DNA of 64,000 bases from Auanema rhodensis (lineage: Eukaryota > Animalia > Nematoda), in NCBI GenBank assembly GCA_964057225.1, contig OZ059900.1, positions 19,344,001-19,408,000 on the forward strand, written 5' to 3'. The notes below the pieces were generated by a model. That model did not search any database, was not told the origin of the DNA, and saw only the letters and a list, made by a program, of their open reading frames with translations. Below are positions 1 to 64,000 of the stretch, one piece after another; the stretch's first letter is position 1, and every line of letters starts with the position of its first letter. A program made the position numbers and the translations under genes.

Positions 1-342
1 AAGGTTTTGACTTACGATTTCATGTGTTCAAACTCATGCAATGTCAATGAAACCTAGCTCAAAATTGTTCCTACAACGTCTAGTTCCACTTTCACGACAA
101 CAAAACAGGGGTTAGAAAATTAAGGAAATTAGCATATTCTGAGGGCACGCCCCTTATGGCTAATATTGATTAAATCGATTTTTGTTCATATGAGTCGTCA
201 AATGCAACGAATTTCAGCGTGTTACATACTAAAATGAAGCATTTCACATGCTGAACACTAGAAAAATACAAAAACACAGTATTTCCCATGAGAAATATTT
301 TATTATGCTGGAAAACCAGTTTTTGGAAATTTCGCTGTAAAC
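1..342 (+). repeat. Representative 342-bp monomer (118 G+C of 342, multiple A/T tracts, one GC-rich core GAGGGCACGCCCC)
   Basis: Read directly from the sequence. The monomer phase is arbitrary. Confidence 0.97.
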
Positions 343-3300
343 AAGGTTTTGACTTACGATTTCATGTGTTCAAACTCATGCAATGTCAATGAAACCTAGC
401 TCAAAATTGTTCCTACAACGTCTAGTTCCACTTTCACGACAAAAAAACAGGGGTTAGAAAATTAAGGAAATTAGCATATTCTGAGGGCACACCCCTTATG
501 GCTAATATTGATTAAATCGATTTTTGTTCATATGAGTCGTCAAATGCAACGAATTTCAGCGTGTTACATACTAAAATGAAACATTTTACATGCTGAACAC
601 TAGAAAAAAACAAAAACACAGTATTTCCCATGAGAAATATTTTATTATGCTGGAAAACCAGTTTTTGGAAATTTCGCTGTAAACAAGGTTTTGACTTACG
701 ATTTCATGTGTTCAAACTCATGCAATGTCAATGAAACCTAGCTCAAAATTGTTCCTACAACGTCTAGTTCCACTTTCACGACAACAAAACAGGGGTTAGA
801 AAATTAAGGAAATTAGCATATTCTGAGGGCACGCCTCTTATGGCTAATATTGATTAAATCGATTTTTGTTCATATGAGTCGTCAAATGCAACGAATTTCA
901 GCGTGTTACATACTAAAATGAAGCATTTCACATGCTGAACACTAGAAAAATACAAAAACACAGTATTTCCCATGAGAAATATTTTATTATGCTGGAAAAC
1001 CAGTTTTTGGAAAGTTCGCTGTAAACAAGGTTTTGACTTACGATTTCATGTGTTCAAACTCATGCAATGTCAATGAAACCTAGCTCAAAATTGTTCGTAC
1101 AACGTCTAGTTCCACTTTCACGACAAAAAAACAGGGGTTAGAAAATTAAGGAAATTAGCATATTCTGAGGGCACGCCCCTTATGGCTAATATTGATTAAA
1201 TCGATTTTTGTTCATATGAGTCGTCAAATGCAATTAATTTCAGCGTGTTACATACTAAAATGAAGCATTTTACATGCTGAACACTAAAAAAATACAAAAA
1301 CACAGTATTTCCCATGAGAAATATTTTATTATGCTGGAAAACGAGTTTTTGGAAATTTCGCTGTAAACAAGGTTTTGACTTACGATTTCATGTGTTCAAA
1401 CTCATGCAATGTCAATGAAACCTAGCTCAAAATTGTTCCTACAACGTCTAGTTCCACTTTCACGACAAAAAACAGGGGTTAGAAAATTAAGGAAATTAGC
1501 ATATTCTGAGGGCACGCCCCTTATGGCTAATATTGATTAAATCGATTTTTGTTCATATGAGTCGTCAAATGCAACGAATTTCAGCGTGTTACATACTAAA
1601 ATGAAGCATTTTACATGCTGAACACTAGAAAAATACAAAAACACAGTATTTCCCATGAGAAATATTTTATTATGCTGGAAAACCAGTTTTTGGAAATTTC
1701 GCTGTAAACAAGGTTTTGACTTACGATTTCATGTGTTCAAACTCATGCAATGTCAATGAAACCTAGCTCAAAATTGTTCCTACAACGTCTAGTTCCACTT
1801 TCACGACAACAAAACAGGGGTTAGAAAATTAAGGAAATTAGCATATTCTGAGGGCACGCCCCTTATGGCTAATATTGATTAAATCGATTTTTGTTCATAT
1901 GAGTCGTCAAATGCAACGAATTTCAGCGTGTTACATACTAAAATGAAGCATTTCACATGCTGAACACTAGAAAAATACAAAAACACAGTATTTCCCATGA
2001 GAAATATTTTATTATGCTGGAAAACCAGTTTTTGGAAATTTCGCTGTAAACAAGGTTTTGACTTACGATTTCATGTGTTCAAACTCATGCAATGTCAATG
2101 AAACCTAGCTCAAAATTGTTCCTACAACGTCTAGTTCCACTTTCACGACAAAAAAACAGGGGTTAGAAAATTAAGGAAATTAGCATATTCTGAGGGCACG
2201 CCTCTTATGGCTAATATTGATTAAATCGATTTTTGTTCATATGAGTCGTCAAATGCAACGAATTTCAGCGTGTTACATACTAAAATGAAGCATTTTACAT
2301 GCTGAACACTATAAAAATACAAAAACACAGTATTTCCCATGAGAAATATTTTATTATGCTGGAAAACCAGTTTTTGGAAATTTCGCTGTAAACAAGGTTT
2401 TGACTTACGATTTCATGTGTTCAAACTCATGCAATGTCAATGAAACCTAGCTCAAAATTGTTCCTACAACGTCTAGTTCCACTTTCACGACAACAAAACA
2501 GGGGTTAGAAAATTAAGGAAATTAGCATATTCTGAGGGCACGCCTCTTATGGCTAATATTGATTAAATCGATTTTTGTTCATATGAGTCGTCAAATGCAA
2601 CGAATTTCAGCGTGTTACATACTAAAATGAAGCATTTTACATGCTGAACACTATAAAAATACAAAAACACAGTATTTCCCATGAGAAATATTTTATTATG
2701 CTGGAAAACCAGTTTTTGGAAATTTCGCTGTAAACAAGGTTTTGACTTACGATTTCATGTGTTCAAACTCATGCAATGTCAATGAAACCTAGCTCAAAAT
2801 TGTTCCTACAACGTCTAGTTCCACTTTCACGACAACAAAACAGGGGTTAGAAAATTAAGGAAATTAGCATATTCTGAGGGCACGCCCCTTATGGCTAATA
2901 TTGATTAAATCGATTTTTGTTCATATGAGTCGTCAAATGCAACGAATTTCAGCGTGTTACATACTAAAATGAAGCATTTCACATGCTGAACACTAGAAAA
3001 ATACAAAAACACAGTATTTCCCATGAGAAATATTTTATTATGCTGGAAAACCAGTTTTTGGAAATTTCGCTGTAAACAAGGTTTTGACTTACGATTTCAT
3101 GTGTTCAAACTCATGCAATGTCAATGAAACCTAGCTCAAAATTGTTCCTACAACGTCTAGTTCCACTTTCACGACAACAAAACAGGGGTTAGAAAATTAA
3201 GGAAATTAGCATATTCTGAGGGCACGCCCCTTATGGCTAATATTGATTAAATCGATTTTTGTTCATATGAGTCGTCAAATGCAACGAATTTCAGCGTGTT

Positions 3301-5442
3301 ACATACTAAAATGAAGCATTTCACATGCTGAACACTAGAAAAATACAAAAACACAGTATTTCCCATGAGAAATATTTTATTATGCTGGAAAACCAGTTTT
3401 TGGAAATTTCGCTGTAAACAAGGTTTTGACTTACGATTTCATGTGTTCAAACTCATGCAATGTCAATGAAACCTAGCTCAAAATTGTTCCTACAACGTCT
3501 AGTTCCACTTTCACGACAACAAAACAGGGGTTAGAAAATTAAGGAAATTAGCATATTCTGAGGGCACGCCCCTTATGGCTAATATTGATTAAAACGATTT
3601 TTGTTCATATGAGTCGTCAAATGCAACGAATTTCAGCGTGTTACATACTAAAATGAAGCATTTCACATGCTGAACACTAGAAAAATACAAAAACACAGTA
3701 TTTCCCATGAGAAATATTTTATTATGCTGGAAAACCAGTTTTTGGAAATTTCGCTGTAAACAAGGTTTTGACTTACGATTTCATGTGTTCAAACTCCTGC
3801 AATGTCAATGAAACCTAGCTCAAAATTGTTCGTACAACGTCTAGTTCCACTTTCACGACAAAAAAACAGGGGTTAGAAAATTAAGGAAATTAGCATATTC
3901 TGAGGGCACGCCCCTTATGGCTAATATTGATAAATCGATTTTTGTTCATATGAGTCGTCAAATGCAATTAATTTCAGCGTGTTACATACTAAAATGAAGC
4001 ATTTTACATGCTGAACACTAAAAAAATACAAAAACACAGTATTTCCCATGAGAAATATTTTATTATGCTGGAAAACGAGTTTTTGGAAATTTCGCTGTAA
4101 ACAAGGTTTTGACTTACGATTTCATGTGTTCAAACTCATGCAATGTCAATGAAACCTAGCTCAAAATTGTTCCTACAACGTCTAGTTCCACTTTCACGAC
4201 AAAAAAAGAGGGGTTAGAAAATTAAGGAAATTAGCATATTCTGAGGGCACGCCCTTTATGGCTAATATTGATTAAATCGATTTTTGTTCATATGAGTCGT
4301 CAAATGCAACGAATTTCAGCGTGTTACATACTAAAATGAAACATTTTACATGCTGAACACTAAAAAAATACAAAAACACAGTATTTCCCATGAGAAATAT
4401 TTTATTATGCTGGAAAACGAGTTTTTGGAAATTTCGCTGTAAACAAGGTTTTGACTTACGATTTCATGTGTTCAAACTCATGCAATGTCAATGAAACCTA
4501 GCTCAAAATTGTTCCTACAACGTCTAGTTCCACTTTCACGACAAAAAAACAGGGGTTAGAAAATTAAGGAAATTAGCATATTCTGAGGGCACGCCCCTTA
4601 TGGCTAATATTGATTAAATCGATTTTTGTTCATATGAGTCGTCAAATGCAACGAATTTCAGCGTGTTACATACTAAAATGAAGCATTTTACATGCTGAAC
4701 ACTAGAAAAATACAAAAACACAGTATTTCTCATGAGAAATATTTTATTATGCTGGAAAACCAGTTTTTGGAAATTTCGCTGTAAACAAGGTTTTGACTTA
4801 CGATTTCATGTGTTCAAACTCATGCAATGTCAATAAAACCTAGCTCAAAATTGTTCGTACAACGTCTAGTTCCACTTTCACGACAAAAAAACAGGGGTTA
4901 GAAAATTAAGGAAATTAGCATATTCTGAAGGCACGCCCCTTATGGCTAATATTGATTAAATCGATTTTTGTTCATATGAGTCGTCAAATGCAACGAATTT
5001 CAGCGTGTTACATACTAAAATGAAGCATTTTACATGCTGAACACTATAAAAATACAAAAACACAGTATTTCCCATGAGAAATATTTTATTATGCTGGAAA
5101 ACCAGTTTTTGGAAATTTCGCTGTAAACAAGGTTTTGACTTACGATTTCATGTGTTCAAACTCATGCAATGTCAATGAAACCTAGCTTAAAATTGTTCCT
5201 ACAACGTCTAGTTCCACTTTCACGACAACAAAACAGGGGTTAGAAAATTAAGGAAATTAGCATATTCTGAGGGCACGCCCCTTATGGCTAATATTGATTA
5301 AATCGATTTTTGTTCATATGAGTCGTCAAATGCAACGAATTTCAGCGTGTTACATACTAAAATGAAGCATTTCACATGCTGAACACTAGAAAAATACAAA
5401 AACACAGTATTTCCCATGAGAAATATTTTATTATGCTGGAAA
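1..5442 (+). repeat. 342-bp satellite DNA array, orientation A (~16 monomers, runs off the left edge)
   Basis: AAGGTTTTGACTTACGATTTC recurs at 1, 343, 685, 1027 and onward (period 342, occasionally 341). Copies differ by only a few substitutions. The forward match ends at ...TTATGCTGGAAA (5442). Confidence 0.99.
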
Positions 5443-5446
5443 TTTC
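5367..5446. other. Inversion junction: 77-bp unpaired spacer (5367-5443) between long inverted satellite arms
   Basis: The left arm ends ...CATACTAAAATGAA (5366) and the right arm begins TTCATTTTAGTATG (5444). The junction reads GCTGGAAATTTCATTTT. Confidence 0.95.
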
Positions 5447-5748
5447 ATTTTAGTATGTAACACGCTGAAATTCGTTGCATTTGACGACTCATAGGAACAA
5501 AAATCGATTTAATCAATATTAGCCATAAGGGGCGTGCCCTCAGAATATGCTAATTTCCTTAATTTTCTAACCCCTGTTTTTTGTCGTGAAAGTGGAACTA
5601 GACGTTGTAGGAACAATTTTGAGCTAGGTTTCATTGACATTGCATGAGTTTGAACACATGAAATCGTAAGTCAAAACCTTGTTTACAGCGAAATTTCCAA
5701 AAACTGGTTTTCCAGCATAATAAAATATTTCTCATGGGAAATACTGTG

Positions 5749-5766
5749 TTTTATTTTTTTTTATTT
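5749..5766. repeat. 13-bp T-rich insertion variant (355-bp monomer), copy 1
   Basis: The consensus GTG-TTTTT-GTAT is replaced by GTG-TTTTATTTTTTTTTATTT-GTAT, and the local period is 355. Confidence 0.9.
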
Positions 5767-6787
5767 GTATTTTTATAGTGTTCAGCATGTAAAATGCTTC
5801 ATTTTAGTATGTAACACGCTGAAATTCGTTGCATTTGACGACTCATATGAACAAAAATCGATTTAATCAATATTAGCCATAAGGGGCGTGCCCTCAGAAT
5901 ATGCTAATTTCCTTAATTTTCTAACCCCTGTTTTTTTGTCGTGAAAGTGGAACTAGACGTTGTACGAACAATTTTGAGCTAGGTTTTATTGACATTGCAT
6001 GAGTTTGAACACATGAAATCGTAAGTCAAAACCTTGTTTACAGCGAAATTTCCAAAAACTGGTTTTCCAGCATAATAAAATATTTCTCATGAGAAATACT
6101 GTGTTTTTGTATTTTTCTAGTGTTCAGCATGTAAAATGCTTCATTTTAGTATGTAACACGCTGAAATTCGTTGCATTTGACGATTCATATGAACAAAAAT
6201 CGATTTAATCAATATTAGCCATAAGGGGCGTGCCCTCAGAATATGCTAATTTCCTTAATTTTCTAACCCCTGTTTTTTTGTCGTGAAAGTGGAACTAGAC
6301 GTTGTACGAACAATTTTGAGCTAGGTTTCATTGACATTGCATGAGTTTGAACACATGAAATCGTAAGTCAAAACCTTGTTTACAGCGAAATTTCCAAAAA
6401 CTGGTTTTCCAGCATAATAAAATATTTCTCATGGGAAATACTGTGTTTTTGTATTTTTATAGTGTTCAGCATGTAAAATGTTTCATTTTAGTATGTAACA
6501 CGCTGAAATTCGTTGCATTTGACGACTCATATGAACAAAAATCGATTTAATCAATATTAGCCATAAAGGGCGTGCCCTCAGAATATGCTAATTTCCTTAA
6601 TTTTCTAACCCCTCTTTTTTTGTCGTGAAAGTGGAACTAGACGTTGTAGGAACAATTTTGAGCTAGGTTTCATTGACATTGCATGAGTTTGAACACATGA
6701 AATCGTAAGTCAAAACCTTGTTTACAGCGAAATTTCCAAAAACTGGTTTTCCAGCATAATAAAATATTTCTCATGGGAAATACTGTG

Positions 6788-6805
6788 TTTTATTTTTTTT
6801 TATTT
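6788..6805. repeat. 13-bp T-rich insertion variant, copy 2
   Basis: Identical insertion 1039 bp (3x342+13) downstream of copy 1. Confidence 0.9.
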
Positions 6806-9800
6806 GTATTTTTATAGTGTTCAGCATGTAAAATGCTTCATTTTAGTATGTAACACGCTGAAATTCGTTGCATTTGACGACTCATATGAACAAAAATCGA
6901 TTTAATCAATATTAGCCATAAGGGGCGTGCCCTCAGAATATGCTAATTTCCTTAATTTTCTAACCCCTGTTTTTTTGTCGTGAAAGTGGAACTAGACGTT
7001 GTACGAACAATTTTGAGCTAGGTTTTATTGACATTGCATGAGTTTGAACACATGAAATCGTAAGTCAAAACCTTGTTTACAGCGAAATTTCCAAAAACTG
7101 GTTTTCCAGCATAATAAAATATTTCTCATGAGAAATACTGTGTTTTTGTATTTTTCTAGTGTTCAGCATGTAAAATGCTTCATTTTAGTATGTAACACGC
7201 TGAAATTCGTTGCATTTGACGATTCATATGAACAAAAATCGATTTAATCAATATTAGCCATAAGGGGCGTGCCCTCAGAATATGCTAATTTCCTTAATTT
7301 TCTAACCCCTGTTTTTTTGTCGTGAAAGTGGAACTAGACGTTGTACGAACAATTTTGAGCTAGGTTTCATTGACATTGCATGAGTTTGAACACATGAAAT
7401 CGTAAGTCAAAACCTTGTTTACAGCGAAATTTCCAAAAACTGGTTTTCCAGCATAATAAAATATTTCTCATGGGAAATACTGTGTTTTTGTATTTTTATA
7501 GTGTTCAGCATGTAAAATGTTTCATTTTAGTATGTAACACGCTGAAATTCGTTGCATTTGACGACTCATATGAACAAAAATCGATTTAATCAATATTAGC
7601 CATAAAGGGCGTGCCCTCAGAATATGCTAATTTCCTTAATTTTCTAACCCCTCTTTTTTTGTCGTGAAAGTGGAACTAGACGTTGTAGGAACAATTTTGA
7701 GCTAGGTTTCATTGACATTGCATGAGTTTGAACACATGAAATCGTAAGTCAAAACCTTGTTTACAGCGAAATTTCCAAAAACTGGTTTTCCAGCATAATA
7801 AAATATTTCTCATGGGAAATACTGTGTTTTTGTATTTTTATAGTGTTCAGCATGTAAAATGCTTCATTTTAGTATGTAACACGCTGAAATTCGTTGCATT
7901 TGACGACTCATATGAACAAAAATCGATTTAATCAATATTAGCCATAAAGGGCGTGCCCTCAGAATATGCTAATTTCCTTAATTTTCTAACCACTGTTTTT
8001 TTGTCGTGAAAGTGGAACTAGACGTTGTAGGAACAATTTTGAGCTAGGTTTCATTGACATTGCATGAGTTTGAACACATGAAATCGTAAGTCAAAACCTT
8101 GTTTACAGCGAAATTTCCAAAAACTCGTTTTCCAGCATAATAAAATATTTCTCATGGGAAATACTGTGTTTTTGTATTTTTTTAGTGTTCAGCATGTAAA
8201 ATGCTTCATTTTAGTATGTAACACGCTGAAATTAATTGCATTTGACGACTCATATGAACAAAAATCGATTTAATCAATATTAGCCATAAGGGGCGTGCCC
8301 TCAGAATATGCTAATTTCCTTAATTTTCTAACCCCTGTTTTTTTGTCGTGAAAGTGGAACTAGACGTTGTACGAACAATTTTGAGCTAGGTTTCATTGAC
8401 ATTGCATGAGTTTGAACACATGAAATCGTAAGTCAAAACCTTGTTTACAGCGAAATTTCCAAAAACTGGTTTTCCAGCATAATAAAATATTTCTCATGGG
8501 AAATACTGTGTTTTTGTATTTTTATAGTGTTCAGCATGTAAAATGTTTCATTTTAGTATGTAACACGCTGAAATTCGTTGCATTTGACGACTCATATGAA
8601 CAAAAATCGATTTAATCAATATTAGCCATAAAGGGCGTGCCCTCAGAATATGCTAATTTCCTTAATTTTCTAACCCCTCTTTTTTTGTCGTGAAAGTGGA
8701 ACTAGACGTTGTAGGAACAATTTTGAGCTAGGTTTCATTGACATTGCATGAGTTTGAACACATGAAATCGTAAGTCAAAACCTTGTTTACAGCGAAATTT
8801 CCAAAAACTGGTTTTCCAGCATAATAAAATATTTCTCATGGGAAATACTGTGTTTTTGTATTTTTATAGTGTTCAGCATGTAAAATGCTTCATTTTAGTA
8901 TGTAACACGCTGAAATTCGTTGCATTTGACGACTCATATGAACAAAAATCGATTTAATCAATATTAGCCATAAAGGGCGTGCCCTCAGAATATGCTAATT
9001 TCCTTAATTTTCTAACCACTGTTTTTTTGTCGTGAAAGTGGAACTAGACGTTGTAGGAACAATTTTGAGCTAGGTTTCATTGACATTGCATGAGTTTGAA
9101 CACATGAAATCGTAAGTCAAAACCTTGTTTACAGCGAAATTTCCAAAAACTCGTTTTCCAGCATAATAAAATATTTCTCATGGGAAATACTGTGTTTTTG
9201 TATTTTTTTAGTGTTCAGCATGTAAAATGCTTCATTTTAGTATGTAACACGCTGAAATTAATTGCATTTGACGACTCATATGAACAAAAATCGATTTAAT
9301 CAATATTAGCCATAAGGGGCGTGCCCTCAGAATATGCTAATTTCCTTAATTTTCTAACCCCTGTTTTTTTGTCGTGAAAGTGGAACTAGACGTTGTACGA
9401 ACAATTTTGAGCTAGGTTTCATTGACATTGCATGAGTTTGAACACATGAAATCGTAAGTCAAAACCTTGTTTACAGCGAAATTTCCAAAAACTGGTTTTC
9501 CAGCATAATAAAATATTTCTCATGGGAAATACTGTGTTTTTGTATTTTTCTAGTGTTCAGCATGTGAAATGCTTCATTTTAGTATGTAACACGCTGAAAT
9601 TCGTTGCATTTGACGACTCATATGAACCAAAATCGATTTAATCAATATTAGCCATAAGGGGTGTGCCCTCAGAATATGCTAATTTCCTTAATTTTCTAAC
9701 CCCTGTTTTGTTGTCGTGAAAGTGGAACTAGACGTTGTAGGAACAATTTTGAGCTAGGTTTCATTGACATTGCATGAGTTTGAACACATGAAATCGTAAG

Positions 9801-10166: not shown

Positions 10167-10314
10167 TTCAAAAACTGGTTTTCCAGCATAATAAAATATT
10201 TCTCATGGGAAATACTGTGTTTTTGTATTTTTCTAGTGTTCAAAAACTGGTTTTCCAGCATAATAAAATATTTCTCATGGGAAATACTGTGTTTTTGTAT
10301 TTTTCTAGTGTTCA
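10167..10314. repeat. 72-bp internal tandem duplication (413-bp variant monomer), copy 1
   Basis: TTCAAAAACTGG...CTAGTG occurs at 10167-10238 and 10239-10310, followed by TTCA. It matches the 24-aa repeat in the ORF track. Confidence 0.95.
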
Positions 10315-13997: not shown

Positions 13998-14145
13998 TTC
14001 AAAAACTGGTTTTCCAGCATAATAAAATATTTCTCATGGGAAATACTGTGTTTTTGTATTTTTCTAGTGTTCAAAAACTGGTTTTCCAGCATAATAAAAT
14101 ATTTCTCATGGGAAATACTGTGTTTTTGTATTTTTCTAGTGTTCA
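13998..14145. repeat. 72-bp internal tandem duplication, copy 2
   Basis: Same structure as copy 1, offset 3831 bp. Confidence 0.95.
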
Positions 14146-16461: not shown

Positions 16462-16609
16462 TTCAAAAACTGGTTTTCCAGCATAATAAAATATTTCTCA
16501 TGGGAAATACTGTGTTTTTGTATTTTTCTAGTGTTCAAAAACTGGTTTTCCAGCATAATAAAATATTTCTCATGGGAAATACTGTGTTTTTGTATTTTTC
16601 TAGTGTTCA
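16462..16609. repeat. 72-bp internal tandem duplication, copy 3
   Basis: Same structure, 2464 bp after copy 2. Confidence 0.95.
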
Positions 16610-19608: not shown

Positions 19609-19756
19609 TTCAAAAACTGGTTTTCCAGCATAATAAAATATTTCTCATGGGAAATACTGTGTTTTTGTATTTTTCTAGTGTTCAAAAACTGGTTTTCCAG
19701 CATAATAAAATATTTCTCATGGGAAATACTGTGTTTTTGTATTTTTCTAGTGTTCA
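19609..19756. repeat. 72-bp internal tandem duplication, copy 4
   Basis: Same structure, 3147 bp after copy 3. Confidence 0.95.
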
Positions 19757-61900: not shown

Positions 61901-64000
61901 GGCGTGCCCTCAGAATATGCTAATTTCCTAAATTTTCTAACCCCTGTTTTTTTGTCGTGAAAGTGGAACTAGACGTTGTACGAACAATTTTGAGCTAGGT
62001 TTCATTGACATTGCATGAGTTTGAACACATGAAATCGTAAGTCAAAACCTTGTTTACAGCGAAATTTCCAAAAACTGGTTTTCCAGCATAATAAAATATT
62101 TCTCATGGGTAAAACTGTGTTTTTGTATTTTTCTAGTGTTCAGCATGTAAAATGCTTCATTTTAGTATGTAACACGCTGAAATTCGTTGCATTTGACGAC
62201 TCATATGAACCAAAATCGATTTAATCAATATTAGCCATAAGGGGCGTGCCCTCAGAATATGCTAATTTCCTAAATTTTCTAACCCCTGTTTTTTTGTCGT
62301 GAAAGTGGAACTAGACGTTGTAGGAACAATTTTGAGCTAGGTTTCATTGACATTGCATGAGTTTGAACACATGAAATCGTAAGTCAAAACCTTGTTTACA
62401 GCGAAATTTCCAAAAACTGGTTTTCCAGCATAATAAAATATTTCTCATGGGAAATACTGTGTTTTTGTATTTTTCTAGTGTTCAGCATGTGAAATACTTC
62501 ATTTTAGTATGTAACACGCTGAAATTCGTTGCATTTGACGACTCATATGAACAAAAATCGATTTAATCAATATTAGCCATAAGGGGCGTGCCCTCAGAAT
62601 ATGCTAATTTCCTTAATTTTCTAACCCCTGTTTTTTTGTCGTGAAAGTGGAATTAGACGTTGCAGGAACAATTTTGAGCTAGGTTTCATTGACATTGCAT
62701 GAGTTTGAACACATGAAATCGTAAGTCAAAACCTTGTTTACAGCGAAATTTCCAAAAACTGGTTTTCCAGCATAATAAAATATTTCTCATGGGAAATACT
62801 GTGTTTTTGTATTTTTATAGTGTTCAGCATGTAAAATGCTTCATTTTAGTATGTAACACGCTGAAATTCGTTGCATTTGACGACTCATATGAACAAAAAT
62901 CGATTTAATCAATATTAGCCATAAGGGGCGTGCCCTCAGAATATGCTAATTTCCTTAATTTTCTAACCCCTGTTTTTTTGTCGTTAAAGTGGAATTAGAC
63001 GTTGTAGGAACAATTTTGAGCTAGGTTTCATTGACATTGCATGAGTTTGAACACATGAAATCGTAAGTCAAAACCTTGTTTACAGCGAAATTTCCAAAAA
63101 CTGGTTTTCCAGCAAAATAAAATATTTCTCATGGGAAATACTGTGTTTTTGTATTTTTATAGTGTTCAGCATGTAAAATGCTTCATTTTAGTATGTAACA
63201 CCCTGAAATTCGTTTCATTTGACGACTCATATGAACAAAAATCGATTTAATCAATATTAGCCATAAGGGGCGTGCCCTCAGAATATGCTAATTTCCTAAA
63301 TTTTCTAACCCCTGTTTTTTTGTCGTGAAAGTGGAACTAGACGTTGTACGAACAATTTTGAGCTAGGTTTCATTGACATTGCATGAGTTTGAACACATGA
63401 AATCGTAAGTCAAAACCTTGTTTACAGCGAAATTTCCAAAAACTGGTTTTCCAGCATAATAAAATATTTCTCATGGGTAAAACTGTGTTTTTGTATTTTT
63501 CTAGTGTTCAGCATGTAAAATGCTTCATTTTAGTATGTAACACGCTGAAATTCGTTGCATTTGACGACTCATATGAACCAAAATCGATTTAATCAATATT
63601 AGCCATAAGGGGCGTGCCCTCAGAATATGCTAATTTCCTAAATTTTCTAACCCCTGTTTTTTTGTCGTGAAAGTGGAACTAGACGTTGTACGAACAATTT
63701 TGAGCTAGGTTTCATTGACATTGCATGAGTTTGAACACATGAAATCGTAAGTCAAAACCTTGTTTACAGCGAAATTTCCAAAAACTGGTTTTCCAGCATG
63801 ATAAAATATTTCTCATGGGAAATACTGTGTTTTTGTATTTTTCTAGTGTTCAGCATGTGAAATACTTCATTTTAGTATGTAACACGCTGAAATTCGTTGC
63901 ATTTGACGACTCATATGAACAAAAATCGATTTAATCAATATTAGCCATAAGGGGCGTGCCCTCAGAATATGCTAATTTCCTTAATTTTCTAACCCCTGTT

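Follow-up and report, generated by a model that had tools for sequence, protein, structure and literature searches.

Does a satellite array change strand because a segment was cut out and flipped, or because DNA was copied backwards across an axis? We asked this of a single strand switch in the nematode Auanema rhodensis, in a stretch of 64,000 nucleotides (assembly GCA_964057225.1, contig OZ059900.1, positions 19,344,001 to 19,408,000), hereafter the window, numbered from its first letter. The whole window was one AT-rich satellite with a 342-bp unit and ~34% G + C. An initial annotation had read the array on the right of the switch as a fold-back copy of the array on its left. Our analysis supports inverted copying, in mirror register, as the link between the two flanks of the switch.

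Satellite array and strand switch

Tandem Repeats Finder (TRF) divided the window into two arrays that had the 342-bp unit in common but on opposite strands: a left array at 1–5442 (period 342, 98% matches, 15.9 monomers) and a right array of the reverse-complement unit at 5444–64000 (170.4 monomers). There was thus a single strand switch in the 64 kb, at 5443/5444. Words of 31 and 60 nt across this point occurred once each in the window. TRF found no further junction in the right arm up to the window end at 64000. A second, reciprocal junction was not present within the window, both arms running past its ends. For the comparisons below the arrays were cut into 15 left and 169 right monomers (184 in total), which were aligned and their substitutions counted. 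They are numbered outward from the junction (L1, L2 and so on to the left, R1, R2 and so on to the right), with L0 and R0 as the innermost segments. The left arm was more homogeneous than the right, with 98% versus 94% TRF matches. The features around the junction were as follows.

1–5366, + strand: left arm of the 342-bp satellite array, 15.9 monomers, running off the window start (TRF and monomer cutting)
4150–5366, + strand: left mirror arm, made of the partial monomer L0 and L1–L3 (mirror alignment, variant frequencies, register test, L0/R0 test)
5367–5443, + strand: unduplicated 77-nt spacer (read directly from the sequence; the alignment starts at 5366/5444)
5443–5444, no strand: strand-switch junction (TRF array boundaries, word counts)
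5444–6672, − strand: right mirror arm, made of R0 and R1–R3, the reverse complement of 4150–5366 apart from 7 substitutions and two indels (1-bp deletion, 13-bp insertion)
5751–5763, − strand: 13-bp insertion of A/T, found in the right arm only and again at 6790–6802 in a tandem copy

Mirror relation between the arms

The initial annotation had listed six variant pairs, one member on each side of the junction, with positions summing to 10822. All six were exact reverse complements over 15-mers, and the arithmetic behind the sum was correct: 5366 + 5444 = 10810, minus the 1-bp deletion (5229), plus the 13-bp insertion (5751–5763). The description of these variants as rare and diagnostic held for five of them, found in 3 to 13 of the 184 monomers (4835 in 6, 4730 in 3, 4341 in 12, 4255 in 13 and 4208 in 4), but not for 4857, which was carried by 74 (~40%). 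Of the rare types in mirror pairing, 174A was found in 3/184 monomers, 367C in 4/184 and 425T in 6/184. Within the window, 174A was restricted to L2, R2 and R5, and the combination of the three monomers L1–L3 had a match, in this order, only at R1–R3 and R4–R6, beside the junction. The concern that the same haplotype might be common throughout the array is therefore not borne out here.

The two arms differed by seven substitutions (5316/5494, 5188/5621, 4929/5893, 4638/6184, 4515/6307, 4419/6403 and 4363/6459) and two indels in 1217 bp, a divergence of ~0.7% (99.3% similarity). In the mirror alignment the one-sided differences noticed earlier, at 4929, 5188, 5494, 6184 and the 13-bp insertion, were real. 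Three further one-sided substitutions had been overlooked (4515/6307, 4419/6403, 4363/6459). The differences lay at about 50, 137, 178, 307, 437, 728, 851, 947 and 1003 bp from the junction, and this even spread along the arms fits the uniform divergence of one copy.

The mirror relation ended between 4207 and 4078 on the left, corresponding to 6615–6744 on the right, after ~1.2 kb or ~3.6 monomers. From 4077/6745 outward the arms differed every 50–80 bp, as unrelated monomers do. The shared informative variants were confined to 4208–4857, with weak support from a common variant at 5047; the segment 5048–5366, and likewise L0, was only compatible with mirroring. L3 (4150–4491) mixed variants of the L4/R8 type (143C, 212T) with variants of the R3 type (234T, 320A, 367C). 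Compared with its neighbour L4 (3809–4149), the mixture resembles a short tract of conversion or recombination within the mirror arm.

To the right of the junction, R1, R2 and R3 differed from L1, L2 and L3 by 1, 2 and 2 substitutions, respectively, that is, by 5 substitutions per 1026 bp for the whole block. When L1–L3 was compared with R(k+1) to R(k+3) over 167 registers, the mean was 19.3 substitutions (standard deviation 3.5), against 5 in the mirror register. This value was tied with register +3, because 5577–6615 recurs without change at 6616–7654, which makes R4–R6 an exact tandem copy of R1–R3; the next best register had 12. The monomer-by-monomer check along the anti-diagonal, suggested by the initial annotation, succeeded only in part: L1 and L3 had their best matches there, but the mirror partner of L2 ranked 8th and those of L4–L15 ranked 11th to 123rd. 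For L4–L15 the mirror partners were no closer than random monomers. As a control, 327 pseudo-mirror axes were set within the right arm, where the monomers are directly oriented; none reached 5 substitutions or fewer (minimum 8). Among the remaining triplet pairs between left and right, only 5 of 2169 did (0.23%). Across the null models, the empirical P for a mirror-register match by chance was ~0.002–0.012. We conclude that the mirror relation between the flanks is real.

Spacer and junction sequence

Outward pairing began at 5366 with 5444, leaving the 77 nt at 5367–5443 unduplicated. As far as 5442 this spacer carried on the left-arm monomer; T5443 was the expected base of neither arm. It opened with a small GCAT...ATGC dyad (5367–5379), and its position 5373 carried a private T>C change. 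A single-copy spacer continuous with the template arm is what a fold-back inverted duplication leaves, and its continuity with the left arm points to copying from left to right, the direction given in the initial annotation.

After skipping 2 nt (5367–5368), the GAAAT at 5439–5443 was the reverse complement of ATTTC at 5369–5373, a match of 5 nt. In simulated satellite spacers, matches of at least 5 nt at an offset of at most 2 nt were found in 0.7% (P = 0.007), with the offset picked post hoc. The match, with its 2-nt slip, is suggestive only as a priming site.

As single-stranded DNA, 5300–5510 was predicted to form one long hairpin (−80.5 kcal/mol, z = −20.5). The region 5279–5531 was also considered as an RNA gene and rejected. 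It gave Rfam matches to microRNA precursors, all below the gathering score (MIR2646 with 102 bits versus a gathering score of 245; also MIR828, MIR1878 and mir-559), because the junction forms a long hairpin. The 342-bp monomer is not an RNA gene array.

Turnover of the array

Two features describe the array beyond the mirror arms.

6616–7830, − strand: exact tandem copy of 5577–6791 with period 1039 (exact run of 1215 bp, identical variant lists)
6673–64000, − strand: rest of the right arm in inverted orientation, ~166 monomers, a patchwork of local multi-monomer block duplications with no mirror register with the left arm

The tandem copy started right where the mirror relation ended and made R4–R6 equal to R1–R3, the 13-bp insertion included. 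This duplication postdates the mirror copy. Of the 167 triplets of the right arm, 52 were present in a second, identical copy. Triplets lay at a median of 11 monomers from their best matches, 71% of which were within 12 monomers. Blocks of 3, 7 and 12 monomers were repeated locally. Exact block duplicates being so frequent, block duplication outruns point mutation. By the time two copies had diverged by 0.7%, a large part of the array would have been rearranged. According to general models of unequal exchange, the edge of an array is its least homogenised place, and it is plausible that a mirror relic survived only at the junction, an array edge.

Units of 3 monomers were found near the junction, a 12-monomer block was present twice (R49–60/R61–72), and a 7-monomer block three times around R122–146.

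Short-read data

We searched 19 public sequencing runs as Logan contigs, in which the satellite was present as contigs of ~60 nt (unitigs of single-nucleotide polymorphism bubbles). An exact 67-nt contig from run X1 covered the 13-bp insertion (5726–5792). Words of the satellite stretch were found in runs X1–X17, under eight organism codes and from eight studies, indicating that all or part of the satellite occurs beyond a single sample or label.

Origin of the inverted arms

Copying across the axis is the best-supported reading, and it probably proceeded by snap-back or template-switch synthesis over the 77-nt spacer. We hold it somewhat likelier than its alternatives taken together that the locus is a local inverted duplication at the strand switch, with the right arm as a fold-back or template-switch copy of the left and the outer part of the mirror since erased by turnover. 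An inverted copy adjoining its template in mirror register is the arrangement expected of a fold-back inverted duplication. Near 5442/5443 in the left-oriented array, the end of a DNA molecule or of a stalled nascent strand would have folded back on itself and primed synthesis again 77 nt upstream, either on its own strand or on the sister strand (snap-back or template switch), possibly at the short GAAAT/ATTTC inverted match with its 2-nt slip. The left arm would then have been copied backwards, giving the right arm as its reverse complement. The arms have since diverged by ~0.7% and the right block R1–R3 has been exactly re-duplicated; turnover may have erased the mirror farther out than ~1.2 kb, so that a relic remains beside the junction. 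The mirror relation, the spacer and the exact re-duplication of the right block can be read directly in the window; the snap-back itself, how long the copy originally was, how the copying ended and the loss of the outer symmetry through turnover are steps that we infer.

The initial annotation had named breakage-fusion-bridge or break-induced replication as examples of such synthesis. Its claim of inverted copying in mirror register holds, but these two mechanisms specifically do not follow. With a mirror copy of ~3.6 monomers in an inverted array of at least 58.5 kb, an arm-long palindrome in the style of breakage-fusion-bridge is absent now.

Several observations weigh against fold-back copying. 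Mirror identity did not extend from the junction along the whole duplicated arm: the symmetry stopped at ~3.6 monomers though the inverted orientation ran on for at least 58.5 kb, and this inverted, non-mirror array needs an explanation of its own. At the inner end, the 190 bp of L0/R0 were no more alike than random monomer pairs, with 4 differing alignment columns (3 events by parsimony) versus a random mean of 4.08. The L0/R0 similarity ranked 53 of 170, and the left segment nearest to R0 was another monomer. These 190 bp are compatible with a copy diverged by 0.7%, given that two of the differences are private singletons and that the spacing is even along the arms, but lend it no positive support. 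The missing outer and innermost mirror identity could be secondary loss through array turnover. Excising the 1039-bp tandem copy did not regain the mirror register (d(L4,R7) = 7). A shift by one monomer was rejected too: it gave L4 = R8 with d = 0, but d(L5,R9) = 8, and the L4 type is common (6 right copies). Other left blocks were equally close to the right arm at non-mirror registers, for example L9–L11 versus R75–R77 with a sum of 3. Three of the arm differences (6307, 4419, 4363) fell on sites that are polymorphic in the array, so later conversion must be invoked for them. Strict inverted microhomology at the junction, counted as in PMC3907307, was 0, and the 5-nt GAAAT/ATTTC match was defined after looking and relies on the private variant 5373C. 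Lastly, among the ~60-nt contigs listed on 5100–5800 none bridged 5443/5444. Depth dipped in the bin 5436–5459 in all four runs. The dip is explained by unitig ends at a neighbouring polymorphic site and is thus neither support nor refutation.

Some of these observations would suit an older strand switch, made by inversion or by head-to-head joining, in which a block of ~0.65–1.2 kb was later converted between the inverted arms; the mirror register would be favoured since a monomer has its closest in-register partner on the other side of the hairpin axis. We consider this unlikely, though not negligible. The positive mirroring at 4208–4857 (weakly to 5047) lies 320–1160 bp from the junction, and the innermost 190 bp look unrelated. 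The L3 patch, with 143C and 212T typical of the L4 type, indicates that short conversion tracts occur here, and identical monomer types are common to both arms at other registers. The differences, however, are evenly distributed along the arms outward of the junction, and the inner ones are mostly private singletons, which fits a copy begun at the junction. Moreover, inverted arrays could pair at any monomer register, making exact register 0 an extra assumption. A two-break inversion, or another kind of join, would need both breakpoints to fall by chance in same-phase copies of one three-monomer higher-order unit. The array is made of local multi-monomer blocks, with 3-monomer units at this very place (R1–R3, R4–R6, R7–R9), and cross-arm block matches of equal quality exist elsewhere. 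We nevertheless regard this origin as very unlikely. A two-break inversion is expected to give no mirror register beyond chance, whereas the observed match was reached by ~2 in 167 registers, by 0.23% of block pairs and by 0 of 327 control axes, and both 174A and the L1–L3 combination were restricted as described above. The inverted segment would also measure at least 58 kb, yet 71% of the closest block relatives are within 12 monomers. The preference of the initial annotation for fold-back over a two-break inversion joining distant parts of the array is thus upheld, such a match being expected in roughly 0.2–1% of unrelated joins.

Finally, satellite arrays are prone to misassembly, and the missing bridging contig and the depth dip would fit a junction that came from a chimeric fold-back read or from a false join of two opposed arrays. 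We give such an artefact a slim chance. A chimeric fold-back read should have arms identical bar sequencing errors, be symmetric to its ends and lack a spacer; here the symmetry ends at 1.2 kb, a 77-nt asymmetric spacer separates the arms, and the differences between them include array-polymorphic substitutions. A chimeric fold-back read is therefore unlikely, as the initial annotation had held. Two assembled copies carry the 13-bp insertion, as does the exact 67-nt short-read contig, and a random false join would not set related blocks in mirror register. Runs from other studies contained 12 of 16 sampled words of 5330–5560, where ~46% of the words of the stretch are private within the window; this evidence is weak and unspecific.

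Relation to known systems

In large palindromes, such as those of sex chromosomes and the inverted repeats of organelles, gene conversion from arm to arm keeps the arms alike. The locus described here has inverted arms, a short spacer and copying across the axis in common with them. It differs in that its arms are tandem arrays, in which any register could pair, and that the similarity is limited to ~1.2 kb. At 99.3%, the mirror arms are also less alike than many direct block duplicates in the array (100%).

In fold-back inverted duplications a single-copy spacer is the hallmark, as described by Hermetz et al. 2014 (PMC3907307), and breaks capped by a hairpin or snap-back start breakage-fusion-bridge cycles in the end-capping model (PMC3834830). 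As in these cases, the inverted copy adjoins its template and the spacer is continuous with the template arm; the short inverted match at the end of the spacer may be a further resemblance. In contrast, the spacer has 77 nt here versus 766–70,466 bp in the human cases (PMC3907307), the recognisable copy is only ~1.2 kb and strict microhomology is lacking. No cap (terminal deletion, telomere or translocation) is visible, and at least 58 kb of inverted satellite follows instead. The structure adds one more example to a known class of rearrangement, the fold-back-type inverted duplication, and does not define a new kind of element.

Satellite arrays of Tribolium show macro-dyad symmetries, in which the inversion sites consist of degenerate, highly conserved units present in thousands of copies (PMC13081366). 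The window resembles them in the change of monomer orientation inside the array, in its multi-kb inverted subarrays and in the hairpin or cruciform potential at the inversion site. Unlike the Tribolium arrays, which tend to symmetry, its visible arms differ greatly in length (at least 5.4 kb versus at least 58.5 kb) and its junction word occurs once in the 64 kb of the window; the feature of interest here is the mirroring at the level of variants. A preprint on programmed DNA elimination in Caenorhabditis does not mention fold-back junctions in satellites (PMC13370393).

The locus provides a variant-level footprint of how a strand switch arose, probably by copying across the axis and not by cut-and-flip. 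It also shows the speed at which turnover erases such a footprint: exact block duplicates are common, and the mirror copy is 0.7% diverged and 1.2 kb long. Alone it is one more inverted duplication, and it would gain weight if fold-back proved to be a general route for the strand switches of this genome. That these switches are made systematically by fold-back (snap-back) repair of breaks within arrays, each leaving a short mirror relic, seems doubtful to us at present. If it were true, satellites would be a readable archive of fold-back events, and in an organism that is holocentric or has programmed chromosome breakage, palindromic products could survive without dicentric breakage.

Other observations in the array

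A literature search for a published 342-bp satellite returned nothing specific. Identical monomer types were found on both arms outside the mirror register. One type was represented by L4, L12, R8, R11, R54, R66, R102 and R111, and a second by L6, L7, L10, L15, R57, R69 and R76. Four identical monomers of 413 bp carried an internal tandem duplication of 71/72 bp (TRF period 72, 100% matches). These duplications were located at 10167–10314, 13998–14145, 16462–16609 and 19609–19756, with spacings of 3831, 2464 and 3147 bp. Such irregular spacing suggests that the variant monomer was carried along by larger block duplications.

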